64,000 nucleotides of DNA from Gracilinanus agilis. Taxonomy: Eukaryota. The position numbers and the translations under genes were made by a program. The number at the start of each line of letters is the position of its first letter. The stretch's first letter is position 1. The notes beneath the pieces are model-generated. The model was not told the DNA's origin and searched no databases. It saw nothing but the letters and a program-made list of their open reading frames with translations. The DNA is taken from positions 28,828,260 through 28,892,259 of the forward strand of contig NC_058132.1 of assembly GCF_016433145.1 (NCBI RefSeq), in the 5' to 3' direction. This document shows, in pieces, positions 22,691 to 63,923 of the stretch.

Positions 22691-22719
22691 TCTATTGAAA
22701 TAGCCATTCCCCTCTCCTT

Positions 22720-27789: not shown

Positions 27790-28919
27790 GAGTTCGAGCC
27801 CTCCCCGCCACGGTCGCCGCCAGACCGTCGGCCCGCAACCCCCTCCCGGAGCAGAGACCTTTAACCCTGTCCAGAGACCCCAGGTCCCCATGTCTAAGCT
27901 ACCTGCCGCGGAGCCCCATTTCCCAAGCTCAAGCCTACCAAAGCCATCGAGAGAACCTCCAGTGGCCCCCGTCACGCTCTACCTCCTGTCCCCAAAACCT
28001 GCCGGACCCACCCACCGCAAATCCCTCGTGCCGCGGGATTCGCCCAGCTACAGCGACAGTCCCAGGCTCCCAAGCCCCTGAGGGCGGGGCTGGGGGTGGC
28101 CAGGGGCTGGGGGTCGCTAGCTCGGTTGATCCCACCACTCCCCCCAAATACACCCCATTCCCAGGCCGACCCCGGGCCCCTGAGAGTGAGGGGCTGGTGC
28201 TGGGGGGATCGGACCTCCAACCCGCACCCACACACGGTTCCTGCTCCTCTCAAAACCCGGTCCAAAGCTGGAGTGAATTACTCTGGGGAAAACCACAAGA
28301 AGGGGGGCGCCCCGGGCGGCCTCAGGAGAGGGCTAGCGTTCGAGAGGATGAACCCACTGCTCGGAATCGATGTCCGGTCCAACCCCGCCCCCTACTCCGA
28401 TTGCAACCTGACCCCTTTCCTATTCCTAGAGTCTCTGACGTGTCGGAAAATATCCCCCCTCCCCTGACTCCGCAGAGAGGAGGGGTCTGTATGAAAATGG
28501 GGCTGAGGGCCCTGGGGTGAGGAACAGAGGGAACACTGGAGAGGTGAGCGCCACGGGGCCTTGGGACTCCTGGAGGGAGCAGGGGCTGGACCAGAGAGAG
28601 TCAGAGAGCCCGAAGCCCCTGACTGACCGAAGGGGGCCGAGGTTCGGGGGCACCAGATTCCTGGGTCCCCGAGAAGGCGCAGGGTTTCCAGGACTCACCG
28701 GATCCGCCAAGTCTTGCGCGTTAAGGGTCTTCGCAGCCTCCCTAGTCTGGGGCCGGGTGGGTGCCCGGGACTCGGGACTACTTTCAGGCTTTGAACCCGG
28801 GAGACTGAGTCTCTAAGGGCTGCGCCTGGACGCCAGGGACGCGTCCCTCGAGGACCCTGTCAAACGAGCGTCTTTCCTCTCCTAGCATCTTGCAGTTGCC
28901 AAGAACTTCGGGAATGACC

Positions 28920-31590
28920 ATGGACCTGAACTGGTTTTGCTGGGATGAGCTGGCGTTGCAGGAAGTGCCCCTGGGATCCGTCTTGGAGCACCCAAGTCTG
29001 GGTACGAAGCAATTGGGCTGGGGGAGAGAAGGGCGCTTCTGCTGGAGGACGGGGACCCGAACCCGAAATCCGTGCCCCCGAGCTCTCCCGTGATGCCCTT
29101 GCCTCCCTCTTTCCAGCCTCAGGAGAAGCAGATTTCTACAGCTCAAAGGCTTCCACCCTGTCAGACCCCAGAGGCTTGGACCCGAGGACCCCTGGAGTTG
29201 GGTGGAAAGGTAAGGAGAGGGCGGTGGACACTTGGGACAAGAGCTGCGGGGAAAGAGATGTGCGGCGGGTCTCTAAGAGAGCAGGTGCCGGAGGCCTGGA
29301 CACCTGGGTCCCGACTAAGTCAGTATTTATAAACTGGCTACTCTGTTCCTGCCCTCCAAGACCTTGCCGTCTATAGGGAGAACCATGGCGTTATAATAGC
29401 AGTTGAGACAAATCCCCGCGGGGTAATTTTTAGAGGGAGCCATTGGTAAGACCCGAGAGCCCTCACAGAGAAGGGGATGTCTGCGCTAGAAAGCCCAAAC
29501 AGGGAGGAGCGTTGAGGGGAAGGTGGGAGCGAACCCGTCTTGCAAAGGCCCTAAGAGTGGAGAAGGGATGGACGGCGGAGCTAGCCCGGAGGGGAGAAGA
29601 GGGCTGGGGGTGCGGCTCTAGAGGCCACATATCCAGAAGTCCTGGGTGGTTACTCCCTCCCTCCTCCCCAAACTCAGCCTCCATTTGACACCTTCCAGCG
29701 CTCCCAGCTAACGAATGCGGCTCGGATTTCCCGTTTCCTGAATTTCCGTGGGGGACTGGTGAGTCCTGGAGACCTGCTTTTGGGTCTGGGGATTCGGGAG
29801 CCGGGTTTACTGGGAAGCGTCGGGGACAGGGGCGAGCGGTCACCCCAAAGGTCTTCAAAGTGAATCCAGGACCTGGATAGGGAATTCGAACTCCCGAGCC
29901 TTCGAGGGGACTGACTAGAGAAAGCCCGAGTCCCTGAAGTGAGGCGGGGGGGGAGTCTAGGGCACCTGGGTCCCCGCAGTTGGGTTGGGGAAGGAGGCGG
30001 AGCTCCTGACACCTCCCAACCGCGACGGCTATCTCCTCCTAGACTCTTCCTCCTTGAATCTCCAGTGTTCTGGCGACTGGACGGACTCTACCTGGTTCAA
30101 CCCAGGCTCCCAACCCTACTGTCCTACCCCTTTTACCTACCCTGAAAGCGCGGGAATCGCGGATCTTACCACCAGCCAAGCAAGCTTCACCTCATGGACT
30201 ACCACCCCTGCCCCAAGCGGTCCCACCCACTGGGACTGTCCCAACGGTCCTTGCTGGGACGGCGGCAGCGCCGCCGGCATGGAATATCCCACCTCCTGGG
30301 AGTTCAGCCAACCTTCGGGCTGTTCAGTTCCCTCGAGCGGGTGTCCAGTCTCCTCTGACTCAACATCACGCTCGGACCGTACCATCGCAGTCCGCGGCCC
30401 CAGGACTGGACACCGTGGTATGTGAACGCCTGAGTCCCCAATAAAGGGGGGGGGGGGTCAGCTCTGGAGAAATAGAACTCTAGTCCTTGAGTAAGAGGGC
30501 AAGGGCTAGGGTGCCTGGGTCCTTGATGAAGTGGGGGTGGGGGGTGGAAGACTGGGGAAATAGAATACCAAGATCCCCAAGGGGAAGTTCTCTGGTTGTA
30601 TGAAGGAGGCACCTCTACTTGGGATCCCTGGGGGGAGAGGAGGGAAGAGATGAGGCGGCACTGAGGGAAATGGCCCGGTGGAGGAGCTCTGGGTGCAGGT
30701 ACGCCAGTGTTCTCACCTGCTGCGCCGCTCCTCAGGTCCCATCCAGCTTTGGCAATTCCTGCTGGAACTCCTCCGGGACCGAGCCGGCCAAGGCTGCATC
30801 CGTTGGACTGGGAATAGCCGGGAGTTCCAGCTATGTGACCCGAAGGAGGTAGGGGCGCCCTCATGGCCCCTCGTTTTAAGGCTATTGAAAGTTTCCAAGC
30901 ATGTGTGGCAAAGGGCGGCTAAGGTTGGCAACAGGCAAAAAGATGCATGCGAGGGACGTTAGCAAGGGAGAATCCCACAAGATTGAAGATACAGGAAATC
31001 CAGGAGAGGGAGGGGAGAGGCAAAGGTAGTACTGTGTGGTACCTAGTTTCCAAGTAGTGGTTCCAGAGGGAGCGGTGGTGATGCTATTGGAGAGAAAGGA
31101 GAGAAGAAGAAGTGGGGGCGGGGACGATGGTAGAAGAAAGGTGTGGGGAGATAATAACGTTCAGTTTGGACCTGAATTCGAGATGCTTGTGGGGCATCCT
31201 AGCGTCAGTGGCTGCTATGCAGCCGGAGCTCAGCTTGGAGCTCAAAAGAGAGGACAAAGCACACTGGATTCTTCGGAACCGCATCAGAAATCATTAGTTC
31301 CTTTTCCGAGCTCCCCGCCCCTTCTTCCCCTCTCCAAACTCCCCCCTTTCCCTGCCTGCCCCTCCTCTCTCCCAGCTCCCCTGAGCCTCGGATCCCGCGC
31401 TCAGCCCCTGGTCTGCCTTCCCTCCGCGCAGGTGGCCCGTCTGTGGGGGGAGCGCAAAAAGAAGCCGGGGATGAACTACGAGAAACTGAGTCGGGGGCTG
31501 CGTTACTATTACCGCCGGGATATCGTGCACAAGAGCGGCGGCCGAAAATACACTTACCGCTTTGGAGGCCGGGTCCCCGACCTACCCTGA
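28920..31590 (+). CDS. ETV2: ETS variant transcription factor 2 (ER71), about 293 aa
   Basis: Exons 28920-29001 (in-frame ATG also at 28914), 29117 (or 29123)-29209, 29699 (or 29708)-29758, 30043-30417, 30736-30848, 31432-31590. N-terminus [23 protein letters not shown] motif, ETS domain [13 protein letters not shown]...[32 protein letters not shown]; syntenic with RBM42 and COX6B1. Acceptors of the 2nd and 3rd coding exons are less certain. Confidence 0.93.
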
Positions 31591-33133: not shown

Positions 33134-33320
33134 NNNNNNNNNNNNNNNNNNNNNNNNNNNNNNNNNNNNNNNNNNNNNNNNNNNNNNNNNNNNNNNNNNN
33201 NNNNNNNNNNNNNNNNNNNNNNNNNNNNNNNNNNNNNNNNNNNNNNNNNNNNNNNNNNNNNNNNNNNNNNNNNNNNNNNNNNNNNNNNNNNNNNNNNNNN
33301 NNNNNNNNNNNNNNNNNNNN
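33134..33320. other. Assembly gap (187 N)
   Basis: N run starting inside a SINE 3' end. Confidence 1.
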
Positions 33321-37683: not shown

Positions 37684-37873
37684 NNNNNNNNNNNNNNNNN
37701 NNNNNNNNNNNNNNNNNNNNNNNNNNNNNNNNNNNNNNNNNNNNNNNNNNNNNNNNNNNNNNNNNNNNNNNNNNNNNNNNNNNNNNNNNNNNNNNNNNNN
37801 NNNNNNNNNNNNNNNNNNNNNNNNNNNNNNNNNNNNNNNNNNNNNNNNNNNNNNNNNNNNNNNNNNNNNNNNN
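37684..37873. other. Assembly gap (190 N)
   Basis: N run abutting a - strand SINE 3' end. Confidence 1.
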
Positions 37874-44083: not shown

Positions 44084-45279
44084 ATGTCTGAGGATATCAA
44101 GACCAAGATCCGAAACTACCGCACTGCACCCTTTGACAGCCGCTTCCCCAATCAGAACCAGACCCGTAACTGCTGGCAGAACTACCTGGGTATGTAGAGG
44201 CCCCACCACCACCACCACCACCAGCCCCACCCAGTACATGCTCTCAGCCTCTCCTCCCAGCATAAGCCTGAACGTGGGTGGTTGTGGTGGTGGTTGCTTT
44301 AACTAGACAATACAAAACCAATACAAAGGATACCAAACACACTATATTTCCCTATGCTTGGTCTTCTTCATAATCCTATGTGTTTTATTTCTATGCATTT
44401 AAAACATTCTGAGAAAAAGTCCACAAGATTCCCCAGACTTCCAAAGGGATGCATGATACAAAGAAAGTTCAGAATCCCTGTCTGTGTTATAGGAATCCTT
44501 CCTTCCTGAGCCCCAAAGTACTTCTGCAATTCAATAGGATGTCAGAGGGAAGAGACTTTCTTTGTGTCTCCATGCCTGGCACAGAGTAGACAAGAAATGC
44601 TGGTGATTTGCAGGTGTCTGGCCCCCTCTTGGGATCGCAGACCCTGAGATTCAGTTTCGTTCCCCCAGACCCCGGGGGCTTCTCCCATCTCCTCCAGGCC
44701 AGCTACTAAAGCCATCTCCTTTCACCTCCTAGATTTTCACCGTTGTGAGAAGGCCATGACTGCAAGAGGTGGTGATGTGTCTGTCTGCCAGTGGTACAAA
44801 CGTGTCTACAAGTCCCTCTGTCCCTTGTCCTGGGTATGTGGCTGTGGGAGGCTTTGTTTTTGTTTGGGAGGGAGAGGGGGTGTACTGGGTCCATCCTTCC
44901 ATTTCTACCTGCTGGCCTTTAGTGACTCTCCTAACCAAGAGTGCCATGCTATCTCTCCAGCTTACCGGGACCTGAAACTTGCCTGCCTTTTGCCCCTGCT
45001 TAGGATTAGCTCCCCACAGTGCAGGGGCTAATTGTGTCCTAGAGCGAGGAAGCCTAGGTACTAGCCTTGACCTTTGTGGGACCCTGAGAAAGTCTCTGCC
45101 CTTCTTTCTTCTGAGAAAGAAGGAATAAGCTTTTGGGGTGGGAGTGCTGAGATAAAGGAATGTGGGTCACATGAAATAAATAGAATAAGGCCTGAAGGAG
45201 GTTGGTATTTTTCTATCATCTGCAGGTGAATACTTGGGATGATCGCAGAGCAGAAGAAACCTTCCCTGGCAAGATCTGA
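44084..45279 (+). CDS. COX6B1: Cytochrome c oxidase subunit 6B1 (86 aa)
   Basis: Exons 44084-44189 (GCCACCATG), 44733-44833, 45226-45279 (TGA): [86 protein letters not shown]; four cysteines conserved; sizes 106/101/54 as in human. Confidence 0.98.
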
Positions 45280-45401
45280 GCAGCTTCCTTTTCCTCCCTT
45301 CTCCCCCACCCCAATGTCTGGGGCTGGATCCCTTCTTCCCTCAGAGTGGGGGGAATGTGATCTGTGGCTACTCCTACCCTGAGGGGCCTGAATCATGTTA
45401 A

Positions 45402-45407
45402 AATAAA
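45402..45407 (+). terminator. COX6B1 polyadenylation signal AATAAA
   Basis: AATAAA about 120 nt after the stop codon. Confidence 0.85.
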
Positions 45408-46150
45408 CTGTTGGAATCAAGCAAGTGTTGAGTGTCCTTGAATGTCCATAGCAGGCTGGGGAGGGAAGGAGAGGGGAAACAACATTACCCACCTACCCCG
45501 ACTTCTGGCGCCCATGAACCTGGAGTTACCTGCCTTTGCCTGTAGGTATTTCATGGGCCCCTTCCTAGGTGGGCATAGCCAAGATCTCAAAGCACCTCTC
45601 CAGAACAGCACATCTCAGGTGCCAATGTGAGCTGAACAGTGGGCAGAGTTTTCTTCACTCTGGAGACTTAAATGGGTTTGGGGGGATTGGAGAGCTGGAG
45701 AGACTAGGCCTCTTCTCTGTGGGGGACCCTGTGTTTTGTCCCAGGGAGACAAGGATGAGATGGGCCAATCCCTCACCCAACCTTTGTTGAGTGTCTATGA
45801 AGTTAGATTTTCTGAGAAAGCTTGTGCCTTTCATGCGTTGGTCCGTGTTTATTATTTTAATTCCAGGTCGAAACCTAAAACTGTGTGTAAAATGACCAAG
45901 TTGGACTTCCTTTACCAGCTTCTCCTCCTGTTATACACAGGATTGTCCCTACTGTAGTGGAAACTTAACAAAGCAGATAAAGTGGTTTTTGTGTGGGAAC
46001 AAGGTTGGTTTGGAGTTGGGTTCCTGATTAAAGTTGGTATTTTAACTAAAGATGTTAGAAAAGCAGATAAGATGGCTCATTTAGTGTGAGTCGTTTTACT
46101 AATCACTTAAGCCAGTGCTTGGCACTTGGTGCTAGAAGAGGACCAAATGA

Positions 46151-46500
46151 CGTATAAATATGAAAAATAATAAAGGCTGCTATAATAATATAAATTAATA
46201 TTTTAATTAAAGCCATGCTGATAGATAAAGTTATTAGACCACGCGCTTGTAAGCATTCAAAACTTGCCGCCTAGCCATAATTGTCTCCTGTCTCCTCCCG
46301 AGTCTGCTGGCCAAGAGCCCACTCCCTCCTAACCCAGGAGATTTAAACTCTTCTCTGCATGGAGACGCAGGCGTCCCCACGCCCAAAGAACCGGAAACGG
46401 AAACCCGTTGGACCACGGGGAAATGTAGTTTGACAATTTCCACGTGTCCATAGAAAATATATATACTTTTAGATAGCATCTCCCAAATTTCACTTTTACA
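46151..46500 (-). mobile_element. Solo LTR related to the 51237-54644 element
   Basis: Reverse complement aligns with the 293-bp LTR (e.g. ATTAGACCACGCGCTTGTAAGCATTCAAAA, CACTCCCTCCTAACCCAGGAGATTTAA); more diverged and about 55 bp longer. Confidence 0.85.
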
Positions 46501-46890
46501 GACATCACTGTCAGGGTCCATGTACAGTGTGTCTGACTGTGACTGATCAAACCAGTATGAGCCGGGCACCAACAGCCCTATGAACATTGGGGATGGGGAG
46601 GGCTCTAGATTTGTGCATCCCACTTTTGAGCTCCTGCAGTTCTGCTTTGCTCGTAGAACACTGCCGTCTTCTTTGAGGTGGGCACTCCGTGCTGAACGGT
46701 CCTGTGCCAGGGTCTCCCATGACTCACAATTGACAACATGGTTCTCCCGAGAGACCTTGAGAGTGTCCTTGTATCTCTTCTGACCTCTGTGTGCATTTGC
46801 CTTGTGTGAGCTCTCTATAAAATAGCCTTTTAGGCAAACAAACATTTGGCATTCAGACCAACATGGCCAACCCATCAGAGCTGGGCCCTC
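46501..46890 (-). mobile_element. RTE/BovB-like LINE 3' fragment
   Basis: Minus-strand peptide RGQKRYKDTLKVS...NCESWETLAQDRSA resembles the RTE ORF C-terminus. Confidence 0.75.
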
Positions 46891-47705
46891 TGCAGTAGTG
46901 AAGCTTGACAGTTCAGGCTGAGAAAAGACCTCAGTGTCTGGTCCTTATCTTACCTGTACCTTCAGGACCTTCCTAAGACAATTCAAATGGAAGTGATTCT
47001 GTTTTAATCTGTGTGGATGGTTAGGTTGAGCTCTAGAACAGATCTGGTTTAGGAGGCTTGGCCAGGTCGTTAGAAAAGGTAAGAAGAAAAAAAACAAAAC
47101 TGATAGATTTGGAATCAGGAAGACCTGAGTTCAAATCTTCACTCAGGCACTTACTAGCTATCAAGCAAGTCATTTCACCTTCTTAGCCTCAGTTTCCTCA
47201 TCTGTAAAGTGGGAACAATATCACCTACTTTGAAGGGTGGTTGTGAGAAACAAATGACATGGAAGGTTCTGTAAATGCTAAAACTCTAACGGCCTTTAGG
47301 TGGCACCAGAATACATAGTACTTAATTTCAACATCAGTTTCAGCTTCCCCAAGAATGGTCAACTATGGGGGCAGCTGAGTGGCTCAGTGGATTGAGAGCC
47401 AGGCCCAGAGATGGGAGGTCCTGGGTTCACAGACACTTCCCAGCTGTGTGACCCTGGGCAAGTCACTTGACCCCCATTGCTTAGCCCTTATTGCTCTACA
47501 CTGTATTGATTCCAAGACGGAAGGTAAGGGTTAAAAAAAAAAAAAAGACAAGAACTATGATACCCATTATAAATATGAAATCATGTAAAATATGTCTACA
47601 TTAGCTATTTTGTACCACTACATTTCTACCCTCTGAGCCCTTCTCTGTACTCACACAGCCACCATCTTAGATTTAGGTCCTCATCACATCTTTCCTGGCT
47701 GTACT

Positions 47706-47784
47706 ATTTCTTTTCTTTTCTTTTCTTTTCTCTTCTCTCCTTTTCTTTTCTTTTCTCTCCTTTTCTCTTCTCTTCTTTTCTTTT
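47706..47784. repeat. (TTTTC)n/(TTCTC)n simple repeat (SINE tail)
   Basis: Directly visible. Confidence 0.85.
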
Positions 47785-49645
47785 ATTAACCTTTGCCTTC
47801 TCTCTTAGTATCTAAACTATATTTTGGTTCTAACACAAAAAAAAAAAAAACAGCAAGGACTAGACAATTGGAGTTAAGTAACTTGTCCAAGGTCATACAG
47901 CTGAGAAGCATCTGAGACCATATTTGAACCCAGGACCTCCTCTCTCTAGATTGGCCAGACTATTTCAATAGCTTTGTAACTCGTCTCCCTGATTCAAGAC
48001 CTCTCTGCAATCCATCCTCCATATAGTTGCCAAAAATGATTTTCCTTCTCTACAGCCCTGACTGTTATTCTCCCACTCAGTGAACATCAGTGACTCCCTG
48101 TCGTTACTGGGATAAGCTCAGAGTTACAAATTTATAATTGGAAAGAACCTCAGCGTCTAGTAAGTTTGATGGTCTCATTTTTATAGATGAGGAAACTAAA
48201 CTCGATTTCACTTTTAAAGCCCTTCCCAATCGGCCCCCAACCTGGCTTTCCAGCCCCTTCAGAGCCTTCTATCTGTTCCTCACCAGGGGATTTTCATCTC
48301 CCGTCTTCCTGCTTTTGCTCCCCATGCCTAGAATGTGCTCCCTCTTTACCTACCCCTCCTTCCAGACACAGCCCCTCAATCATTTTTTTTTTTAATGCCT
48401 TTGCCTTCCATCTTAGAATCAATACTGTGTATTGGCTCCTAGGCAAGAGAGTGGTCAGGGCTAGGCAGTGGCGGGTTAAGTGACTTGCCCAGGGTCACAC
48501 AGCTAGGAAGTGTCCAAGGTCACATTTGAACCCAGGACCTCCCATCTCTGTGCCTGGTTCTCAATCCACTGAGCCGCCCAGCTGCCCCAAATCGTCCCCT
48601 TCTACATGGAGCCCTTCCCAGTCTCCTTTCCTAAATCCCTTGCATTTGGCTAACTTCTATTTATTTTCTTTTAATTTATACTGCATATACTCATGTAAGT
48701 ACACATCGCCCTATTAGAATTCATTTCCTTATTTATATATTATTTTGCTTTTTGCCTTTGATTCCCCAGTGCCTGGCCCGGCCCAGTATTAAATGCTTGT
48801 GGATTGAGTCAGACACTGTGAAGAAGACAAAACTAACCAGACCCTTCCCTCAGGGCACTTACATTGAATGGGGAGAAGGAAACCAGACACTATTTTTTAT
48901 TTTGTCCTTAGGAATCCCAGCATCTAGCAGTGCCCAGCGTATAGTAGGTCTTTTTTTTTTTTTTTTTAAATTTTTTTAAACCCTTAACTTCTGCGTAGTG
49001 GCTCCTAGGTGGAAGAGTGGTAAGGGTGGGCAATGGGGGTCAAGTGACTTGCCCAGGGTCACACAGCTGGGAAGTGTCTGAGGCCGGATTTGAACCCAGG
49101 ACCTCCCGTCTCTAGGCCTGACTCTCCATCCACTGAGCTACCCAGCTGCCCCCATAGTAGGTCCTTAATCAGTCAGTGTTTGTTGGGAACTTTCCCAATA
49201 GTCTAGCTGAAAGGTATCAACCTCACTAGCCTTTTGCCACTAGGTGGTACATGGTAATCGGTAAATGTTAACTAAAGCTAGGCACAGGGATGGATGGAGA
49301 GGTCAGAGATGACCAGGGGGGCTTGTTAGGACTGGAGGGACCAGGGCTGGGGAGCCTCAGGATGCTGGATCTCCTTCCCTTCGTCATCTCAGCAACTCTT
49401 GGGCTATTGCTAGACAAAGCTGTTTAACCTCTGCGCACACATCTACACTAACCTGATCCCCCTCCCCTTAGTGGATTTATCCAGTTCCCACCATGTTATT
49501 CTCATGGCTAGCACTGATCATGAAACAGACCCAGAGGCTCTTTGAGCTCTAACCTTAGGGGGGAGCCAAAACCCTGAGGGTGAAACCTCCTGAAGTTTGG
49601 TGACTCAAACGAAAGAAGAACCAGGACTCCTGGGTCCCCCTAACC

Positions 49646-49942
49646 CAGTGATTCCCAAAGTGGGCACCACCGCCCCCTGGTGGGTGCTGCAGCGATCCAG
49701 ATCCAGGGAAGCGGTGATGGCCACAGGTGCATTTCTGAGTTCAATAAATAGTTTCATAATTTCAAAGTTCAATGTTTCTAATTTACACCTTTCCTATATT
49801 TTACGAAAAAGGTAGAAACATTAATACATATATCTTTCCTATTCATTGCTATTAAAATTTTTTTAAAAATTAATTTCCAGGGGGCTAAGTAATATTTTTT
49901 CTGGAAAGGGGGTGGGAGGCCAAAAAAGTTTGGGAACCCCTG
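49646..49942 (+). mobile_element. hAT MITE, family B, long copy d (297 bp)
   Basis: Same termini; TSD CCCTAACC / GCCTAGCC; longer interior. Confidence 0.85.
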
Positions 49943-50259
49943 GCCTAGCCTCTGGGGCAGGGGAAAAGCTCCAACAATTAGCTCCGTGATTCTGGGCAAA
50001 AGTCTTGACCTCTCTTGACCTCAGTCTCCTTATCCGTAAAATGAGAAGACAAGGGGCAGCTGGGTAGCTCAGTGGAGTGAGAGTCAGGCCTAGAGACGGG
50101 AGGTCCTGGGTTCAAATGTGGCCTCAAGACACTTCCCAGCTGTGTGACCCTGGGCAAGTCACTTGACCCCCATTGCCCACCCTTACCAATCTTCCACCTA
50201 TGAGACAATACACCGAAGTACAAGGGTTAAAAAAAAAAAAATGAGAAGACAAACTGTTG

Positions 50260-53200
50260 GAGTAGGAACACAGGCAAAAGCATATATTTCATCACTTGTT
50301 TATTTGGGTATACTTTGGGGGTTTGGGCTCTATAAGATTATTCACTCACTGAAATGAATGATATGGAAATATGTTTTGCGTGATAGCACATGTATAACCC
50401 AGATTGGATTGGTTGTCAGCGCCGGGAGGGAGATAGCACAAATCATGTAACTTTGGAAAACTTATGTGTAAATTTGTTATTGGAATAAAATGAAAGATTT
50501 TTTTAAAAAGATAATGCATGTATAACCCAGCTTGTCAGCTCCGAGAGGAGGGAGGGAAGAAAGGAGGAAGACAATATGGATCATATAACTTCAAAGACTT
50601 ATCTGAAAATTTGTTATTAAAAATTTTTTAAATAAGAATTCAGGACGAGACGATGATATCTGGCGTTTGTAAAGCATTTTAGTTTAAAATTTTTTATTTT
50701 ATTTTTATTATCAAGCAACACGTACTTTCCAATTGGTCATTTTTTAAAATTAAGTTTATTTATTTAATTAATTTAGAAGATGTTCCCATGGTTACCTGAT
50801 TCATGTTCTTTCTCTCCCCTCCTCCCACCTCCCCTCCTGTAGCCAACGAGCAATTCCACTGGGTTTTACATGTGTCATTGATCAAGTTGGTCATTGTTAT
50901 AAGAGCGAACTCATATAAAACCCAAATCCCAAAATAAAACTGAATATATTGATGAGAAAGAAAGTCCATTTCGATCTGCATCCATCTGACTCTTTCTCTG
51001 GAGGTAGAGAACATCCCTGTCATTAGTCTTTCAGGATTGTCCCTGATCTTTGCTTTGCTTTGCTGAGAGGAGCCAAGTTTTCACAGATGATCATCAGACA
51101 ATATTGCTGTTACTATGTATAATGTTCTCCTGGTTCTGCTTATTTCACTCTGCATCCGTTCATGGAGCTCTTTCCAGCTTTTTCCTGTTCTTCTTTCCTT
51201 ACACAAGCACGATAGTCTTTCATCACCAACATGTACTGTAAAAAGTAATTTGGGAAATGTATAAAACTACATTTCCCGTGATCCAACATGGTCCAACTGG
51301 TTTCCGTTTCCGACGTCTTGACGCAGGGGAGAGCTTAAATCTCCTGGGTTAGGAGGGAGTGCTCTCTTTGCGAGTAGGCCATGGCCAGGAAACAGGAGAC
51401 AAAATGGAGGTGGCGGCAGTTTTGAATGCTTACAAGCGCGTGGTCTAATGATTTTATCTATCAAAATGGCTTTAATTAAAATACTAATTTATATTATTAT
51501 CACAGCCTTTATCATTTTTCATATTTACAATTATGGCAACCAGAAGTTTGGAAATAGAATTTTCAATTTTCTAGATAGCCTAAGAGGAAAAAGCCATGCG
51601 GCTCTGGGACCCAGAGTCTCAGAAGCGAATTTTCTAGATAGCCTAACTATAGCCATGCCTGCTTTTTGGCCATCTGGCTCAGCTCTTTTGAGCACTTTTT
51701 TAAAAAAGGAAAGTGACTTTCCTTGCCATGCTTTTGCTAAAAGCAAGAGCACGTTTTTGCCTCCAGTGGGACTCAGCCGGCCAGTCCAGCCCAAGCCACC
51801 TTGGGAGGGAGGTCAGGCCAGCCGATTCGGGCTTTTGGCTTTAAACTAAAATGCCGGAGCCCAGCCAATGTGCTGCTGCTGATGCTGCTGCTGCTGATGC
51901 TTTTCTTGCTGCTGATGCTGCTGATCCTGACCACTTCCACTTCAACCCCGAGCTCCAGAACCTGAGATTTCCAGGACGGAACCCAGTCCTGCCGCCTTTG
52001 CTGAGATCGAGACCTCCAGAGACTGCTTCAGCTCTGACGCAAACCATTTGGGTATATTCCCCTTTCTCCCTATTTCTAGCCTTAGACCTAATTAGGCAAC
52101 AACCCACACAGACTCTACACGTGGGTAGTTTTCCTGAGCTTTTCTCCTCTAACCCCAAGCCCACGTGGACCTAGCATCTGAACCTCTCAGGCGCTTGGCC
52201 TATTCAAACTTTTGCGATTATTAAAAAAACTGAACTTAGGGGAAGCCTATTCACCCCATACCTGCTCAGAACTTTGAACTGATAGCAAAGACTGGTGATA
52301 AAAAAAAAAAAACCCTTAAACTCAGCAGAACTCAATCAAAAGAACCTTAAATTGAAATCAGGGGTGAACTTTTAAAACCTCGGAACTGAATGAGCTTTAT
52401 TTCTGTTTTAAAAAGACTGTATCTTACTGTATATTGCTAATTAGTTTTGTTAATTAATCTTGCTTACTTCGTTGATATTCCTGTTGCACTGAATCATTTT
52501 ACGCTAATGAAGTTTCTGCTTATGATGTTATTATATTTACTAATTTACTTAAAGCTTACTGTATCAGAAACAATGCGGTTATATGTACCACCTATGAACA
52601 TCTTATAGAGCACATGTCTTTAAAATTTATTCTGTCTTGGTAATTGCAAAGAACCTTGAGAGTTTCCATGCTTTAAATATTACCTTGTAATTTTACAAGA
52701 GATCTTTTTTAACTTTTACTTTAAATCCTTAAGAAATTGTTGTCTTAAAGGATAAAGCTTTTAGATATTTTATTATAAGAGATATTATTGCCTTAAATGG
52801 GTAGAAGCATTCCTATCCAGGATTTTTTTAAAAACAGGAAGCCAAGGAGCTCCTGTATATTCTTATCTGAGGATGATTATACCAGAAGGTTTCTTTTTTA
52901 AATATCACATTTTGCTATGGAAGCAATAACAGCATTTGCCAAGGGTTAAAAGTTGTAACAAGTATATAATTTTGAACATCATTATTTATTGTTTTAAAAT
53001 GTGCTACTGGAAATAATGGTACTCTATTTGAATGTGCATTGTGAATCTGCTTTTTGTAAGATCCATTTTCACTCACAAAATGAAAACCTCATTTTGGGGT
53101 AACATAACCCTTCTAGTTCTAAGCTATATATATATATATTTTTTTTTTTGATTTTTGAAACATTTTTCTAATGAGAAATTGATTTTCCCTTTTTATCATC

Positions 53201-54770
53201 TTGTACTGGAAGTACATATATAATCATTATTTATCCTTTTTCTGAGTCTACAGCAAATACCTGAGCCTATAGGACTGTGATTTAAATGCCTTTCTGATTC
53301 CAGAAGGGAATATGAAAGCCATTAATAGTGCTAAAAAAAGCACATGGTCAGAGACTTGACTGACTAAGATCTGCAAAATAGCAGTTCTATGCCAATACAT
53401 TAGGGCTTGAAATTGGGTTTGAGTCCTGGAGTCCCAGTCTTTTCTAAAACTTTAGAGGACGTGGGTCCCCTCGACTTAGATTCCTAGAAAGCACCTAAGA
53501 TTGGTTATTTACTTGGCTCACTTCCCTAAAAAGCTGATGATAAGTCAGATCAGAGAGAGACATTTTCCTTATGTCCTGGCCCTGAATGGGTAATTGCACA
53601 CTGTGAATTCACTTTAATTAGACCTTCATTCAAAGGTCTAAGTTTATTTTCCCCAGATTTTTTTGCACATTTTACATTTCACAAGTTAATTTTTTCTTTT
53701 TTCTTGAATTTTATTCTTTTTATTTTGCCAATTGAATTCATATAAACCCCCAGGACTCAGCCACTCATCCTTAGCTGACCTGAGATACCCTTTTTTAGAA
53801 AAAAGGTGTGTTTAAGAATTACCTCACGGGGATATCTGTTAAGTTTTTTAAAATTCGATAATGTAAAAATATATGTATATTTATTTAACTCTTTTAGGAG
53901 TAATTTCACGGGGAATTATATAAAATCTTAGAAGAAAATGTATGTTTTGTAATCTATAATGTAAGGTTTAAATTCTTTTGAGAATAATTTCAGGATAAGG
54001 ACCTTGCCATCTCCCCAGAATCCAGACGACGAACTTGTTTTGGTGAAGACACCATGAAGATGTCTGAAAAGCCTTCACTGTACCATGAAGACCAAACTTT
54101 GAACTTTGGGGTGCAGTTGATTGAACTATGGGGAGTTGAAATTGAGTTGTATGTATTGTTTTAAATTGTACACTGTGCCAGTGGGGGACAGCCCCCCAAA
54201 TTGGTTTTTTGTCAATGCGTCTAATTTTAACCATTTGTTCATCTATTTCTTTTATCCCCAAAATTCCTGAAAATTTTAGAAGTTGCTATTTTTACAGGTC
54301 CAGCGAAGAAAAAAGGACTAACCTTTTTTTTTGCCGGACCTCACGGGGAATTGTAAAAAGTAATTTGGGAAATGTATAAAACTACATTTCCCGTGATCCA
54401 ACATGGTCCAACTGATTTCCGTCTCCTATGTCTTGACACAGGGGAGAGCTTAAATCTCGTGGGTTAGGAGGGAGTGCTCTCTTTGCGAGTAGGCCATGGC
54501 CAGGAAACAGGAGACAAAATGGAGGTGGCGGCAGTTTTGAATGCTTACAAGCGCGTGGTCTAATGATTTTATCTATCAAAATGGCTTTAATTAAAATACT
54601 AATTTATATTATTATCACAGCCTTTATCATTTTTCATATTTACAGTACCGCACTTTGTTCAGCCATTCCCTAGTTGGTGGGCATCATCTCAATTTCCAAT
54701 TCTTTGCCACCACAAAAAGAGCTGCTATAAATGTTTTTGTACAAGTAGGTCTTTTCCCCTTTTGTAAACC
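50260..54770. mobile_element. L1 3' ends: tandem + copies 50260-50630; a - strand copy 50690-51236 continuing at 54645-54770
   Basis: CATCACCAACATGTAC | GTACCGCACTTTGTTCAGCCATTCCC joins across the LTR insertion. Confidence 0.7.
51237..54644 (+). mobile_element. Complete LTR retroelement (probably ERV1-like, non-autonomous)
   Basis: 293-bp direct LTRs 51237-51529 and 54352-54644 (TGTA...TACA, 6 differences); 4-bp TSD GTAC at 51233-51236 and 54645-54648; purine run CGGGGAAT before the 3' LTR; no long gag/pol ORF in the 2.8-kb interior; inserted into an L1 fragment. Confidence 0.9.
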
Positions 54771-55639
54771 ATTTAAAAACATTTTCTTATCTGGGCCCCA
54801 CGGGCATTTTATAGGTGAGAAAATGGTGGCTCCGAGTGATTCAGCCTTGGTTGCACAGCCAAGATATATGATTTGAACACAGGTCTTGGTACTCCAAAAC
54901 ACTCTATCCACAACTAGTTATATCGCCTCCCAGTCTCCAAAGGGCTGTGCATCTTTGATCATCCATAAATCTCCTGCGTTCCATTTCCTTTCCACCCTGC
55001 TTCCAACGTCCTTATGGAAATGGTGGTTTTGAGAACACCTGGGAACTCTCTCAAAAACACACCTGTGGGTGAATAAACATCTTCCTCTCTCTGCTCTGCG
55101 CCTTCCTCTGGGGAACTGAGAAGCATTTTTGTGGCTTCACGGATTGGTCTCTCCCAATCCTGCCCGGCTTCATTTGGGTGTCCGGGAGGTTGCTTGTTGA
55201 TTTAATAGAGTAGATGCAAAATCTGGCTGGGCCTCATTTTGGACTTCCTGTGATCTCCTGGCTATGGGGTAGGAATCCATTGGGCACATGGAGGAAAAGC
55301 CCGGACGGGCAGTTAACCAGGGCTGCAGCTACACCGCCCCCCCCTTGAAAGTAACACCACCAGACGTGGAAAAAGGGACAGAGAACGCCAAGGCAGCCCT
55401 CCCTCCGCCCCAGGTGTGATATCCAGCTCTGCCCGGAGAGGGTCAGAGGACACATCTACCTCTGGAGACCCCAGCCATGTCAGGGAGGGAGGTCTGGGGA
55501 AGGGAGGAAAGGGCTGAGGCTCAAGCCCTCCCAGGGAGACTTTGCATCATGGGCTGGAGGGAAGGTCCATCCTTGCCCGGACCTTGCATATTGAAATCTT
55601 GTCACCCTCTGCCCCATCCAAGATTGGATCCTCCTCCCC

Positions 55640-57620
55640 TTTGTTCAGTAGTTTCAGTTGTGTCTGATTCTTTATGACCCTGTCTGCCATTTTCTTGGTG
55701 AAGATACTGGAGTGGTTTGCCATATCCTTCTCCAGCTGATTTGACAGATGAGGAAACTGAGGCAAACAAGGTTAAGTAATGTGCCTAGGGTTTCACTGCT
55801 AGTTAGTGTCTGGAGCTGGATTTGAACTCAGATCTCCCTGCCTCCAAACTCAGCATTCTATCCATGCATTGAGCCACCTACCTTCCCATCTTTAAACAAG
55901 ATATAATGCTTCTATTCTTTTACATGCTGCCCTCCTAACCTATGATTATGGGATCCTAGCTCGAAGGGACTCCAGAGGCCCAGGAAGGGTGAGGCAAAGC
56001 ATCAAAGACAGGATTTGAACCCAAATCTTCTGACTCTAAAGCCAGGGCCCTTCTCACTGTGCCACGCACCTCCTGTTTTCTTTCTTCCCTTGGATCTGAG
56101 ATCTCCCCGGGCTCATAATAATTAGTGACTCCACACACCGTCTGTGCCTCTCCTCCATGAAAAGCTGCTGGGTTCGTCCACTCTTTTCACCTCCAGACTT
56201 GGTGGGAAGGGATTTATAATGGGGAATCCCAGATTTGGAACTGGAAGAGACCTCGGCAACCATCTCATCCAGTCCCACCACTTTATAGATGAGGAATCTG
56301 AGGCCAAGATAGGCCAACCGACTTGTTCTAGGTCACACGCTAGCCTCGGAATTCCCGAACTCTACTTGGGCTGGCTGGCACGTCTCACCCCTGAAAGGAG
56401 CTCCTTTGCTCGCTGTGGTTTAACTGACCTTTACTGGTCCCTGCAGGGGCTTCCACCAGATGAACTCACCTCCTCCTAGGCACACACCACATTCTGATAA
56501 AGTCACCCCATTGGGTAGGAAATCAAAGAGGTTTAAGAAAAAATAAAGAAAGGGGCTGGGGGTGGGTGGGAGGTTTTCTCTCCATGTTCAAGGACGGTTG
56601 AGGTAGCCTGAAGACAGTTCATGGGGGCCAAGGGCATTTGAAGGAGGCAAGGGCTAGACACTAGCCTAAATTACCCTCTCCCGACTTCCACACCTCCCGA
56701 GCTTTAGGGATGGCTTCTGTTGATGTAGTTCAATTGTAGCCAACTTTTCATGACCCCATTCGGAGTTTTCTTGGCAGAGATACTAGACTGGTTTGCCATT
56801 TCTTTCTCCAGCTCATCTTACAGATGAGGAAACTGAGGCAAACAGAGTTAATTGATTTGCCCAGGGTGACACAGCTAGAGTCTGAGACTAGATTTGAACT
56901 CAAGTCTTCCTGACTCCAGGCTTGGAACTCATCCACTGGACCACCTAATTGCCCCCCAGGGGTGGTCTACTCCTTTAGAATATAAGCTTTTTCAGGGTAA
57001 GAACTTCCTTCACTTTTGTGTTCCTCTCCTCAGTGCTTAGCTCATGTTTGGCTTCCAATAAGCACTTGGTAAGTGTTTAAGAAGGGCCAGTTAGGGGGCA
57101 GCTGGGTAGCTCAGTGGATGGAGAGCCAGGCCTAGAGACAGGAGGTCCTGGGTTCAAATCTGTCTTCAGACACTTCCTAGATGTGTGACCCTGGGCAAGT
57201 CACTTAACCCCCATTGCCTAACCCTTACCACTCTTCTGCCTTGGAGCCAATTCACAGTATTGACTCCAAGATGGAAGGTGAGGGTCTTAAAAATAACAAA
57301 TAAACAAATGAACGAAAGAATGAATGAATGAATGAACAAACAAATGAATAAATAAATAAATGAAAATTTTTTAAAAAGAAGGGTCAGTTAGATGGTGAAA
57401 TAAAGTAGTGACCCTGGAGTCAGGAGGACCTGAGTTCAAACCCAGCCTAAGACACTTCCTGGATGTATGATCCTGGACAAGTTGCTTCACTCTGTTGGCC
57501 TCAGTTTCCTTATCTGTAAAGTGAGCTGGAGAAAGAAATGGAAAACGACTCCAGAATCTCTGCCAAGAAAACCTAAAATGGGGTCACATCTGACACGACT
57601 AAACAAGAATAAAATGCTTT
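55640..57620. mobile_element. MIR/MAR1-like core SINEs (about 55640-55890, 56710-56955, 57390-57620; also 33745-33950, 47090-47280, 60200-60420)
   Basis: Core motif TTTTACAGATGAGGAAACTGAGGC with CTTGGCAAAGATACTGGAGTG-type flanks. Confidence 0.7.
57095..57375 (+). mobile_element. SINE with (GAAT/AAAT)n tail
   Basis: TSD AAGAAGGG(C/T)CAGTTAG. Confidence 0.9.
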
Positions 57621-58249
57621 TGTCTTCGTTCATTCATTCATTGTGGAGAAGGACAAATGAGATCCACTGAGGATCTGGCCAGGGTAGACTAAACTTTAAG
57701 GAGGAACCTGGGCTACTGACTGATCGAGAGACAGAGACTGGAGGAAGGGCTGAAAGGAGAAATATTTACAGCCTTCTCCTCCTCCTCCTGGCCCTACATA
57801 TGTGTCAGGGGCTTTGAGAGATGGGGCGGCCAGCCGTGGAAAGGGCCCCGAGAGCCACGGCGTCTTCTGGAGAGAGCTGGGTTTCTGTGAGCACCCGAAG
57901 ACGGAGGGAAGCGCCCTCAAGGAAGATGTCTGGGATCACAGACTTAGAGCTGGAAGGGAGTTGTTTGGGAGTCGGATTCCATCGTTTTACGTACACAGGG
58001 AGAGCGGAGGCTCTGGAGTGTGAAATAGCTTTCCCAGAGCTCAGAGATTGTGGCCGAATCAGGATTTGAACTGAAAGCCTCTGACTCTAAAGCCAGAGAC
58101 TCTCAGGGACTCAGTTTCCCTCTCTGTAAAAGGAAAAGTTCCATCAGATGGCAGTAGTAAGAACAGATGTTTACAGCCCTTTCTTAACATAGATTAATGC
58201 CTTTGACCCTCACCACAAACTTGTGAAGAGCTTTCATCGTAACCATTTT

Positions 58250-58434
58250 TTCTTATTTTTTAAACCATTATCTTCTGTCTTAGTATCACTTAAGAGAATG
58301 ATAAGGGCGAGGCAGTTGGGGTTAAGTGACTTGCCCAAAGTCATACAGTTAAGAGGTGTCTGAGACCAGATTTGAACCCAGGTCCTCCCGACTCCAGTCC
58401 TGGTGCTCTATCCACTGAACCATCTAGTTGCCTC
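58250..58434 (-). mobile_element. SINE
   Basis: Diverged match to the SINE unit. Confidence 0.75.
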
Positions 58435-58689
58435 TCATTGTAACTATTTTAAGGATAGGAACATCTGATTGCAGTGACTTGCCTAGAGTCACACAGGCAA
58501 TAAATGAGGCAGAATTCAAACTCAAGCCTTCCTGATGCCATCTCCAACACTTTGCCCGCTCTGCCACCCGACTCCAGCTCTCTGTTTGTAGGAGCCCTGA
58601 AAGCCCCACTCGGTCCCCGAGGGACAAGCCCAGTTAATGCCTCCCAAGGTGGCAGGATGAGGGAGATGGCAGGGAGCAGAGTTGGCTGT

Positions 58690-58993
58690 TCCTGGGAGTG
58701 GAGGGGTTGTCAGGCTGAGGAATGTCTCTGGCATGTGCTGACGAGGGGGGATTCCTGATCCCGGCTCTGCCCCCACCCCAGCAGGAAAATAAGGAGGAAA
58801 GAGCCAGAGCTCTCCGGAGAGCGTGTAACGAAAAGAAGGGTGCCCCGGGAGTGAGCAGATCGGGCTTCCAGGCCCCCAGCTGGCTGCTTTTGAGCCAGGC
58901 CCCTCTCGGCTCTGATGGTCTCTAAGTCTCCCAGACATCCGGAAGCAGGGAGCTGAGCCGGAGCGAGGGAAGGGCTAGAGTTGGGGGGCAGAG
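58690..58993 (+). promoter_or_regulatory. NPHS1 proximal promoter / 5' UTR
   Basis: TATA-less; TGGGAG (WT1-like) 58693-58698, GGAATG (TEAD) 58719-58724, TGCTGAC (MAF half-site) 58736-58742, CAGCTG 58877-58882. Confidence 0.5.
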
Positions 58994-61900
58994 ATGGCGA
59001 TGCCCAGGGCGGCGCTGCGTACCGGAATCTTCCTGCGGCTGCTTGGGGCAGGTAAGAGAGACCATCGGCCCCCACCCCTCCCCCTAATAGACCTCGATTC
59101 CACGTCCCCTTCCAATGACTTCTCTCTTCCCCAAAGTCTGGCTCCAGACCCCACCCCGGCAGGACTTCTGGATGCTACCAGACAACGTGACGGTCATCAC
59201 CGGGGAGGACGTCGTACTGAAATGCGGCGTCCGGGCCCGACAAGGGCACGTGCAGTGGGTGAAAGATGGTTTCGTGTTGGGTCCCAACCCTCAGATCCCA
59301 GGCTTCCCCAGGTACCACATGACAGGGGACCCCGATCAAGGTGAGTTCTGTCTGGCTGCCAAGGTCCAAGGCAGAGGGGCCCAGGGTTACCCAAGGAAAA
59401 CACTTCTAATAATTCGCCCCACCGGCAGCCTCCAAGCAGAGGTCTGACGATGACCTGCTTGACTGCTTGTCGGAGGAAGAGGGGATTCCTTCTGGGTCGG
59501 GGTTGGACCTTCCTGACCTGGGCTGCTGGGAGAGTTGACCATCACCCCACAAATGCAAGCGAAGACTCCTCTCTGGGCTAGAACGAACCTCAGGGCGCCG
59601 AATCTCTCTGGACAGGCGAGTTTCACCTCCACATCTCTAAGGTTGATATCAGCGACGACGCGGAGTTCGAATGCCAAGTCAGCCGGTCCGAGACCAGCCC
59701 CGAGCTCATTTCTCCTCGGATCAGCGTCACTGTGCTAGGTATGAGCTCTGGCCCTCAGGGCCCCAAGTTCTTAGCAGGGTTCCTCCCTTCCCTCTGCTCC
59801 ACCCTGACCTCAGCCCCAGGCCCCCCAGAGAGGAGCCTCCACCGGCCTCTGACCATCCTAAGAGCCTCCTTAGCCAGATTCTGGGGTGAACCTTCTTGGA
59901 GATCCCTGCATCAGTCACCCCATTCTTTACGAGCTTTGGGGGGCTCAGGCATCTAGTCTTGGGGTCATTCTCGCTGACTTTGGGGTGAGATTCTCTGCTC
60001 TCTGACCCTCCTCCTCCTTCAGTACCTCCCAAGGCGATACAAATGAATCCTGAGGTTGGGAGCTTGGTCACCTGGGTTGCTGGAGAGGAGTATTCAGTCA
60101 CCTGCACCTCCAGTGACTCTAAACCAGAGGCTGAGATCTCCTTTCACCAGGGTGAGTGGGTGTATGTGACTGAGACTTTTTGGTGAGACCAATATTTTGT
60201 GGTCATTCAGCCATTTCAGTCGTGTCCGGCTCTTCTGACCCCATCTGGGATTTTCTTGGCAAAGACGCTAGTTTGCCATTTCCTTCTCCAGCCCATTTTA
60301 CAGATGAGGAAACTGAGGCAAATGGGGTAAAGTGACTTGCCCAGGGTATCTGAGGACAGATTTGAACTCAGGTCTTCTAGACTTAAGGCCTGATACTCTA
60401 TCCATTCACTAATTCATAGTTACCAATTCCATGAGGATGCATTGAGTGTCTGCTGTTTTATTGGGGGGGGGTAGTTTGTGGGAAATCCAAAAGTGAATCA
60501 AATGCCATCCCTTAGGCTTCACTTCTGACACATTCTGGCTGTGTGTCCCTGGGCAAGTCACCGACTCCCAGAGCCAAAGGCCACCTTTTAGAGACGATAA
60601 ATGGCTTAAGAGCTACCGTGCCAACCCCCTCTGTCCTCTGATGGCTACCCCAGTCAAAGCTTCCCCCCACAAGGACCTCCACTGACATGGGAAACCTCCT
60701 TATCCAGGAGGAACCTCTATCAATTAAATCAGGAGTCCAGGCCCTGACTATGTCCTAGCATTTCTGTCCAAGCTCTTCTATAGTAGGAAAGAGAAGGTAT
60801 GTGCCCAGGAATGGCCAAATGAAATAATATTTGTCAAGTTCTAAGCAAGGTGCCTGGCACATAGAAGGCACTGAATGAATGTATCTTCCCTTCCCTTCCT
60901 CTAACCCCAGACCGCTTGGGAAAGGGCATTTAAAGGTCTGAACTATATTGGAAGCTCAGGGAAGGATAAATAGACTTCCTTTTGGAAGAATCAGGCAAGA
61001 CGTCCTGGTGGAGATGCCATTTGACCTGGACACTGAGAGATGGGCAGAGACTAGATTTGGCTCAGACGGGCATTCCGAGGTCTGTGGAATTGTACGAGGA
61101 GAAAAGATATGGTCAAAGAGAGCGAGAAGGACTCATTGGGCTGGAGCGGAGGGGAACAAAAATGGGAGCAACAGGGAACAAAGCCATAGGAGGGACTCAA
61201 GATCAAAGCAAGGAATTTGGACTTTATCCTCTGAGAAATGGGAAACCACTGAAAGGTTCCAGCAGGAACGTCTCTAATAAAATAAAGAACCAGAGCCAGT
61301 CACACGAAGCTAAATCTGGCCGTTTGTGCAGGATGGATTGGAGGGAGGAAGGGTCTAGAGGCCAAGATATAAGTGAGGAGGCTGCTGGAATATTCCAAGG
61401 CAGGGGCCAGGAAATCCTGAGCTTGCACTTATGCTGTGTGGGGGTACAGGGCTGGGATAGAATCAACAGGCTCTTGGGATTGATTGGATGTGGGAGGGGA
61501 GGAAGGAGATGACTTGGAGGAGGGCAGGGCTATTAACCGGAGAAGGGAAGGCAGGAAGAAGGGGGTTTGGTTGACCAGAGCATGAGTTTGGCCTGGGTTA
61601 GTCAGGTGGAGGTATTAGCAGGCTACTTAGGAGGGAGATGGAATGGTGGGGAGAACCCCAAAAGTAGACCACAGATAGAGATCGGCATGTGTGGCTGTGG
61701 AGGGCAGAGCGAGAGAGGCAAAACCAAGGAAGCTTGGATCTTGGGGATAAGCTCCCTTGGATCACTGGGAGATGTGGTCCCCCCATTCTCCCTAATTCCT
61801 GATCTAGCTCTGTGTGTGTCTCTCCCTCCCTTTCCCCCTTCTTCTTGCTAAGCAGACACCTGGCTGCTTCCGGATGTCTTTCCCTACACAAATCCTGGAT

Positions 61901-63923
61901 CCCAGGAGAAATTCGTTACCACCGAGGCTACAGTCAGGTAAGGTGGGAAGGCAGGCCATGGACCCCCAAGGACCCAAACTCTTCCCCCCAATTTAGTCTC
62001 CTCCCTGGCCCTCCCTTTGAATCCCTCTCTGCCTAGGGTGACTCCCAGGCCCTCTGACAACGGGAAACTCCTGGCCTGTGAAGTGATCAATCCAGCCATG
62101 AAGGAGCCCTTGAAATCTTCTTTCACCATGAACATTCTGTGTGAGTTAGGGCGCCAGCACATGGTGGGAAGGGGGGGCCCTGTTCATTCACTGAGAGAGT
62201 CCAGCATGTTCCCCTCCGGGAAGCATAGGCATCGCGACTCACTGGGAAATGGGAGGCCAGGGTGGGACGTAGAGGAAGCTACGTTCTGGGTCTCTTTGAG
62301 GACGTCCAGGGCTGAACGTCCTCTGGGTCCCTTCTCCCCAGTTCCCCCCGGCCCTCCTGTCATTGAGTGGCCAGGCCAGCTGGAAGGGAAAGCTAAAGCC
62401 GGACAGAATTTGGAGCTGCTCTGTGTGTCACGAGGGGGAAACCCTCTGGCCACGCTACAGTGGCTAAAGGTAAGGTGGGGGATCTGGGAAAACGAGGCTT
62501 TCAGTGCCAGGACCCCCCGTTCACTTTTTCCACCCTCTCCCCACACCAGAACGGGAAGGTGATCTCCACAGTTTGGGAGACTGACCACAAGCAGGCCCTG
62601 GCCCGAAGCCTCCTGCCCCTGACCATTCAGCCGGAGGACAATGGGGCCCAGCTCAGCTGTGAGGCCCAGAACAGCGTGTCCCCTGAGGTTCAAGAGCACG
62701 TGATCACGCTGCACATCACCTGTGAGGACCGCGGGATCGTGAGAGCTGCCCTCGGCCCGGTTCCGTCCCAGAGTCTCCTCGGAGTCACTAGTTTCTGTGC
62801 TGAAGTTGTGTGTCCCCTTCCTCTGCCCCAGCCTTCGTTTAGTGCCCCCAGCTTGGGCACCAGAACCGTGACTGGGAATTCTGGTGCCCAGGGCAGATGC
62901 AGTTTGGGGAGATGGACCTCTAGAGAGAGGGGGCTCTGGGATGCCTTGCTTTGAAGAGGGAGATAGACGCCAGGCTTCCTTATAACTGGGAAGAAGGTCA
63001 CTTTCGTCCTCTGTAAAAGGCATGGCTCGGGTCCTAAAAACATGGCGGAGGGCAACAAGGAGGGGCAGCCCTTCCTCCAGAGGAGCAGCCAGCGAGTGCC
63101 CTGGGCCCTTGAGACAAACTGGGGAAGGCAGCTGGCAGCAGAGGGAGCGCCGTAAGAGTGGGAGCTTGGGGGTGGCAAAGTGCAGGGTCCTGATGGGGAG
63201 AAAGCCCCAGCCAGCCACCCCGGCCTCGTTCTAGCTCTGACTGGTGCCATCTTCACATCTCTCCATCTCCCTCCTTCCAGTCCCCCCCAGCGCCATCATC
63301 ATCTTGGGCTCCACAAGCCTAGAAGAAAACAAGACCACAACCTTTTCCTGTTACACCAAGTCTAGCAACCCCGGAGTCCTCCTGCGCTGGTGGCTGGGGT
63401 GGCGGGAGCTGATCCCCACAGACGTAACCGTCACTGATGTGAGTTCTGAGGGCTCCAGCCCTGGTCCCCAAGGAGGAGGGTCCCCAAGTTCCTGAGGCCA
63501 TATTCGAACCCAGGACCTCCCAGCTCTAGACCTGGCTCTCATTGAGCCACCAAGCTGCCCTAGATGGGCTTTTATTAAGCACCTATTATATACCAGGCTT
63601 AAAACTGGGTTCTGGGGATAAACACAGCTGGGATCCAGGCCAGCCCTCTGTGGGGCCTGGGCAAACTGGTAGGGACTGAGGAGGACCCCAAGGCTTGGGT
63701 CCACCTTAAGTGGGTCCTGAGGAAATCTTTGGGCTGGAGGGCTGGAGGCCCCAATTTAGCTTCTGATTCCATCCTCAGGGCTTGCACGGTGGCCGAGTGA
63801 CCATGTCGAATGTGACCTACACTGTGAGAAGGGCAGACAACGGGCTCATGCTGACCTGTGAGGCCTTTAGTGAGGCTTTTGCCAAGGAGACCCTCAAGAA
63901 ATCGGTCACACTCAATGTGAAAT
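58994..63923 (+). CDS. NPHS1: Nephrin, exons 1-10 (3'-partial; Ig domains 1-4)
   Basis: Exons 58994-59051, 59137-59340, 59616-59738, 60023-60151, 61856-61937, 62037-62140, 62342-62469, 62550-62721, 63281-63438, 63779-63923 (58/204/123/129/82/104/128/172/158/145 nt), matching recalled human sizes except exon 2. Peptides [60 protein letters not shown]. Confidence 0.97.

Follow-up and report, generated by a model that had tools for sequence, protein, structure and literature searches.

NPHS1 follows COX6B1 in Gracilinanus agilis and other marsupials, probably through an inversion that parted it from KIRREL2

In humans the genes for nephrin (NPHS1) and Neph3/filtrin (KIRREL2) lie head-to-head, 5 kilobases (kb) apart, and share a bidirectional promoter (PMC2736951; PMC6448927, citing Ristola 2012). 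In humans and mice they are described as a co-regulated pair, and WT1 and NF-kappaB are reported to activate the shared promoter. The question raised here is what has become of this pair in marsupials, and how old the pairing is. The window studied is a stretch of 64,000 nucleotides from Gracilinanus agilis (assembly GCF_016433145.1, contig NC_058132.1, positions 28,828,260-28,892,259 of the forward strand), and all coordinates given for this species are positions in that window. An earlier note on this DNA had proposed that NPHS1 directly follows COX6B1, both on the + strand, and that the head-to-head pair is absent. Both proposals hold: the COX6B1 reading frame ends at 45279, that of NPHS1 opens at 58994 or 59000, and annotated nephrins occupy the same slot, directly after COX6B, in Sarcophilus and Trichosurus. 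The two genes are represented by the following features.

44084-44188, + strand: COX6B1 coding exon 1 (35 amino acids; 81% translated identity to the gecko COX6B1 exon)
44732-44836, + strand: COX6B1 coding exon 2 (35 amino acids; matches proteins named cytochrome c oxidase subunit 6B1, Pfam PF02297)
45229 (start approximate)-45279, + strand: last coding exon of COX6B1 (16 amino acids; stop codon 45277-45279)
45280-45425, + strand: likely 3' untranslated region of COX6B1 (AATAAA at 45402)
58994-59053, + strand: NPHS1 exon 1, signal peptide (first ATG 58994, conserved ATG 59000, GT donor after 59053)
59124-59354, 59615-59737, 60031-60180 and 62002-62139, + strand: NPHS1 exons 2-5 (approximate; by nephrin similarity)
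62362-62510, 62526-62720, 63280-63438 and 63779-63922, + strand: NPHS1 exons 6-9 (approximate; by nephrin similarity)

The three coding exons of COX6B1 (35 + 35 + 16 amino acids) make up an 86-amino-acid protein of the COX6B family, and in DNA comparison the 3' flank of the gene can be aligned to Sarcophilus as far as 46085 (block 44618-46085). NPHS1 exons 2-9 span 59124-63922 (+) and the gene continues past the window end, with only its N-terminal immunoglobulin (Ig)/C2-set portion lying inside. Of the two in-frame ATGs of NPHS1 (58994 and 59000, a distance of two codons), only the second aligns with the nephrin start of the devil (Sarcophilus) and the opossum. Database matches of the Ig exons carry the name nephrin; an exon-sized word search for nephrin relatives yielded fragments on short contigs alone, from which no gene order can be read. 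When six clean exons were compared singly after translation, identity was 88% to the nephrin of Monodelphis, 81-86% to those of Australian marsupials (devil, possum, koala, bilby and wombat), 59-62% to those of eutherians (elephant and armadillo) and 52% to that of platypus. Since exon identity is highest to the annotated nephrins of the nearest taxa, the gene is, as judged from its exons, a nephrin ortholog and no KIRREL paralog. Nephrin queries (E ≤ 1e-3) found no match elsewhere in the window.

The spacer between the COX6B1 stop and the NPHS1 ATG (45280-58993) measures 13.7 kb and holds not a single N, as had been claimed, because the only runs of N in the window (33134-33320 and 37684-37873) both lie before 45280. 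No trace of a partner gene was detected in it. A tblastn search with 148 nephrin-family Ig proteins, all of which match the NPHS1 part, gave a best E-value of 0.026 in the spacer, and hence the KIRREL2 exons that had been named as a possible counter-finding are not seen there. Three monotreme UPK1A/tetraspanin proteins from platypus and echidna had no match in the spacer at E ≤ 10, and a Pfam search of its 55 longest stop-to-stop open reading frames (ORFs; at least 70 amino acids) returned noise only, so that the earlier observation of neither Ig nor tetraspanin ORFs is borne out. Ig exons are thus missing on both strands from the whole 13.7 kb upstream of NPHS1, and a divergent neighbour of KIRREL2 type is absent from the roughly 10 kb next to the 5' end of the gene. 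Rfam families and transfer RNA (tRNA) genes were likewise not found in 45280-58300.

The same arrangement is met in other marsupials. In Sarcophilus, COX6B (+) is followed 9.3 kb on by NPHS1 (+) and then by a 252-amino-acid tetraspanin (+). The exons of this tetraspanin share 66-81% identity with platypus uroplakin-1a, and on its sequence we therefore take it to be UPK1A. In Trichosurus, COX6B (+) lies 8.5 kb before NPHS1 (+). In Monodelphis, NPHS1 (+) is followed 6 kb downstream by a 269-amino-acid tetraspanin (+); no COX6B is found within 10 kb upstream of NPHS1 in this species, and what is seen there is the downstream tetraspanin only. The recurrence of the order in these species implies that it is older than the divergence of American from Australian marsupials. 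A further gene model of Trichosurus, on the opposite strand, encodes 1692 amino acids without a Pfam match and covers both COX6B1 and NPHS1, with a span of over 36 kb; it is possibly an annotation artefact.

It had also been considered that the order might be a misjoin of the assembly at the repeats of the spacer, or that the Ig gene might be a paralog, with the true NPHS1 still beside KIRREL2. The spacer does offer material for the former, as it carries many copies of tRNA-derived/MIR-type short interspersed elements (SINEs) and a long terminal repeat (LTR) element. Its repeats and its blocks shared with Sarcophilus are as follows.

46155-46371, - strand: solo LTR of the same family as the LTRs at 51237 and 54352 (detected as inverted repeat pairs)
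48843-49483, no strand: three short blocks of non-coding DNA in the same order as in the Sarcophilus spacer (DNA comparison)
51237-54644, + strand: young LTR retroelement (293-nucleotide LTRs 98% identical, TG..CA ends, GTAC target duplication)
55066-55639, no strand: non-coding blocks beyond the LTR element, likewise in the order of the Sarcophilus spacer (DNA comparison)

Altogether the spacers of G. agilis and Sarcophilus share 11 collinear blocks, from the COX6B1 3' flank to NPHS1 exon 2 and on both sides of the LTR insertion, the element itself (51237-54644) being missing at the matching place in Sarcophilus. Unique blocks thus flank every large repeat in collinear order, and the gene order recurs in independent chromosome-scale assemblies of Sarcophilus, Trichosurus and Monodelphis; on these two grounds a misjoin is excluded. 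A paralog fares no better, with exons 81-88% identical to the marsupial nephrins annotated at the same place and only 52-62% identical to those of platypus and eutherians. We hence give next to no credence to a misjoin or a paralog: the COX6B1(+)-NPHS1(+) adjacency is real and was already present in the ancestor that living marsupials share.

Has the pairing been lost by marsupials, or was it gained by eutherians? The earlier note had left both options standing, and comparison with other vertebrates upholds the first and speaks against the second. In platypus, a 703-amino-acid Ig gene (-) ends 9.6 kb upstream of NPHS1 (+), while uroplakin-1a (+) lies 1.9 kb downstream, with no further genes within 10 kb of it. 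The same head-to-head layout is found in elephant, where a 704-amino-acid Ig gene (-) ends 3.5 kb upstream of NPHS1 (+), and in the smalltooth sawfish, where a 703-amino-acid Ig gene (-) ends 8.1 kb upstream of nephrin (+). As an Ig gene stands beside nephrin in all three, the pair is ancient, marsupials lost it, and it is no eutherian innovation; on this evidence the KIRREL2-type-NPHS1 pairing reaches back to early jawed vertebrates. Ten mid-length family representatives were tried as a KIRREL reference and rejected, as they proved nephrin-like. When the first, non-Ig exon of the upstream gene of platypus and sawfish was compared, and only that exon, none of the 148 family representatives matched it. 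The sawfish nephrin is long, spanning 37.8 kb (10001-47783 of its locus, with an ankyrin-repeat gene at 56611-57783) versus 14-18 kb in mammals.

In echidna, NPHS1 and UPK1A are annotated as one 1463-amino-acid product (isoform X1) with both fn3 and Tetraspanin domains, and a 253-amino-acid "nephrin" isoform (X4) clusters with platypus uroplakin-1a. The fusion, whose model spans positions 10001-29552 of the locus, is a read-through annotation artefact that misnames UPK1A as isoform X4. The 10 kb upstream of echidna NPHS1 align to platypus 3310-10000 and end short of the place where the Ig gene would be expected. Monotremes hence possess both the KIRREL2-type|NPHS1 and the NPHS1->UPK1A junctions (both in platypus, only the latter being seen in echidna), of which marsupials have retained just NPHS1->UPK1A. 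In eutherians KIRREL2|NPHS1 is the one that survives, as the human order known from papers and general knowledge illustrates.

Two sets of conserved segments are found in the upstream region of NPHS1.

57632-57876, 58050-58120 and 58179-58251, + strand: upstream blocks conserved among marsupials (Sarcophilus comparison)
58689-58781, + strand: core NPHS1 promoter block (80% conserved with Sarcophilus; weakly with platypus and echidna)

When the marsupial spacer was aligned sensitively, as DNA, against the KIRREL2-NPHS1 spacers of the monotremes, a single unique block matched, 58691-58781 (E = 0.16 in platypus and 0.022 in echidna), and all else that matched was MIR-type repeats. The distance of this block from the ATG is the same in both monotremes as in G. 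agilis. An alignment of two marsupials and two monotremes shows its 14-mer TGGCATGTGCTGAC (58729-58742), about 260 nucleotides before the nephrin ATG, without any difference among the four species. The 14-mer is followed in the marsupials by GGGGATTCC at 58747-58755, for which the monotremes have GGGGACTCC, and both forms, with the pattern GGGGA(T/C)TCC, look like a kappaB site. The nephrin core promoter hence travelled with its gene, and the breakpoint lies upstream of about 58690, which is as closely as the alignments place it. The blocks within 57632-58251 may be part of the promoter or a candidate enhancer.

How did NPHS1 come to lie behind COX6B1? We favour a platypus-like ancestor, from which the marsupial stem lineage would have inverted [PRODH2..UPK1A-NPHS1] once and eutherians, separately, PRODH2..UPK1A, and put the probability of this course of events at about 0.68. 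In the ancestral mammal, KIRREL2-type and NPHS1 would have been head-to-head, and UPK1A would have come next after NPHS1, in the same orientation. A single inversion of some 125-145 kb in the marsupial stem lineage would then have flipped the whole [PRODH2 ... UPK1A - NPHS1] segment, with one breakpoint between KIRREL2 and NPHS1, on the upstream side of the nephrin core promoter, and the other just 3' of COX6B1. This would bring the NPHS1 5' end behind COX6B1, preserve NPHS1->UPK1A and leave KIRREL2 facing PRODH2. In eutherians, an independent inversion would have affected PRODH2..UPK1A only, keeping the NPHS1-KIRREL2 pair and parting NPHS1 from UPK1A. If A denotes the segment ending with COX6B1, B the segment UPK1A..PRODH2, N NPHS1 and K the segment beginning with KIRREL2, the ancestor would read A - B(inverted) - N(-) - K(+); inverting [B N] would then give the marsupial order, and inverting B alone the eutherian one.

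Two other routes start from the human order. The earlier note had proposed one inversion of the whole UPK1A..NPHS1 block, giving COX6B1-NPHS1-PRODH2...UPK1A-KIRREL2. Such an event accounts for the strand of NPHS1 and its place beside COX6B1 in the window, and the part of the claim that puts a breakpoint between the old KIRREL2 and NPHS1 5' ends survives. It predicts, however, that PRODH2 comes after NPHS1, whereas the gene found there in Monodelphis and Sarcophilus is a tetraspanin on the same strand (UPK1A by sequence in the latter). This contradicts the scheme, which we regard as highly improbable. The other route lets NPHS1 alone move from a eutherian-like therian ancestor (COX6B1-UPK1A...PRODH2-NPHS1-KIRREL2) into the COX6B1-UPK1A spacer in inverted orientation, by excision or copying or through two nested inversions. 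It fits in that shifting and flipping NPHS1 turns the human order into the marsupial one, but it needs at least two marsupial events plus a separate monotreme inversion, and the NPHS1->UPK1A junction common to platypus, echidna and marsupials would be a coincidence. We consider it unlikely, though far from negligible. The platypus-like ancestor is preferred because it requires two events in all, while a eutherian-like one requires at least three together with a convergent NPHS1->UPK1A junction.

Several points nevertheless weigh against the inversion of [PRODH2..UPK1A-NPHS1] from a platypus-like ancestor. The label "KIRREL2-type" for the Ig gene of platypus, elephant and sawfish stands for its length, Pfam domains (I-set, Ig_3 and C2-set_2), position and strand. 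The downstream neighbour of sawfish nephrin is neither UPK1A nor PRODH2; it is a 484-amino-acid ankyrin-repeat gene on the opposite strand. The NPHS1-UPK1A spacers of Sarcophilus and the monotremes share no conserved non-coding DNA, and the common descent of this junction is therefore argued from order and strand only. The nephrin loci compared are those of marsupials, monotremes, elephant and sawfish, and the eutherian COX6B1->UPK1A order is taken from established knowledge. The search with COX6B1 exon 2 brought up no COX6B1 of a monotreme. We infer the position of COX6B1 in monotremes and the PRODH2-KIRREL2 junction in marsupials, as we do the number of inversions, one per lineage.

A search of the literature found no account of a rearrangement at marsupial nephrin, although the order is visible in public annotations; as a kind of event, a lineage-specific inversion is already known. 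The present analysis contributes the monotreme intermediate, the pairs in sawfish and elephant, the collinearity of the spacers, the conserved promoter block and the model of a block inversion. In the three-way comparison, both ancestral junctions survive in platypus and just one of them in each therian lineage, and hence the human order is not safely taken as ancestral.

Set beside the human and mouse pair, G. agilis retains the nephrin core promoter, including the kappaB-like GGGGATTCC next to the invariant 14-mer, and the pair has the same head-to-head layout in elephant, platypus and sawfish; the upstream region of G. agilis NPHS1, in contrast, is the 3' flank of COX6B1. The layout of platypus and echidna, KIRREL2-type(-)|NPHS1(+)->UPK1A(+), agrees with that of marsupials in the NPHS1->UPK1A junction and its strand, and differs in that an Ig gene is still head-to-head upstream of NPHS1, where marsupials have COX6B1. 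The pair has also met a different fate in birds, likewise amniotes, which have lost both NPHS1 and KIRREL2 (PMC4290089), whereas the marsupial nephrin is intact, with nine clean exons here, and the two genes were only separated.

Marsupials therefore represent a natural experiment, in which the pair has been cut apart throughout the history of the group while nephrin has stayed intact with its core promoter, and the split bears on whether the shared NPHS1-KIRREL2 region is needed for co-regulation. It is possible, though we hold it doubtful, that the COX6B1 3' flank served as an inversion breakpoint twice independently, on the marsupial and the eutherian stems, and that the separated NPHS1 and KIRREL2 are still co-expressed in marsupial podocytes. 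If they are, the shared bidirectional promoter would be dispensable and each gene would have a sufficient podocyte element of its own, which for nephrin would be the block with TGGCATGTGCTGAC and the kappaB-like motif.

The wider setting of COX6B1 agrees with the human RBM42-ETV2-COX6B1 order given in the earlier note. An RBM42-like RRM exon (at about 26.5 kb) and an ETV2-like ETS exon (at about 31.4 kb) precede COX6B1 in that order, all on the + strand, and the two runs of N between ETV2 and COX6B1 measure 187 nucleotides (33134-33320) and 190 nucleotides (37684-37873). In the gecko Paroedura picta, a 464-amino-acid RRM gene (+; positions 18871-24033 of the gecko locus) lies 4.8 kb downstream of COX6B1 (+). 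If this gene is RBM42, the gecko order differs from that of mammals, in which RBM42 and ETV2 come before COX6B1; in the part of it that was compared it has no match to the RBM42 exons of the window, and the gecko locus is uninformative. For Petaurus COX6B1, there are no further genes within 10 kb.

Two minor observations concern the spacer element and the nephrin exons. The interior of the LTR element (51237-54644) is 2.8 kb long, AT-rich and without a recognisable ORF, with a (TGC)n run at 51871-51929, and the element can be described as non-autonomous. The longest ORF in the NPHS1 part of the window, 344 amino acids at 62184-63218 on the - strand, runs antisense to NPHS1 exons 6-8 and probably arose by chance from the GC-richness of the coding DNA.

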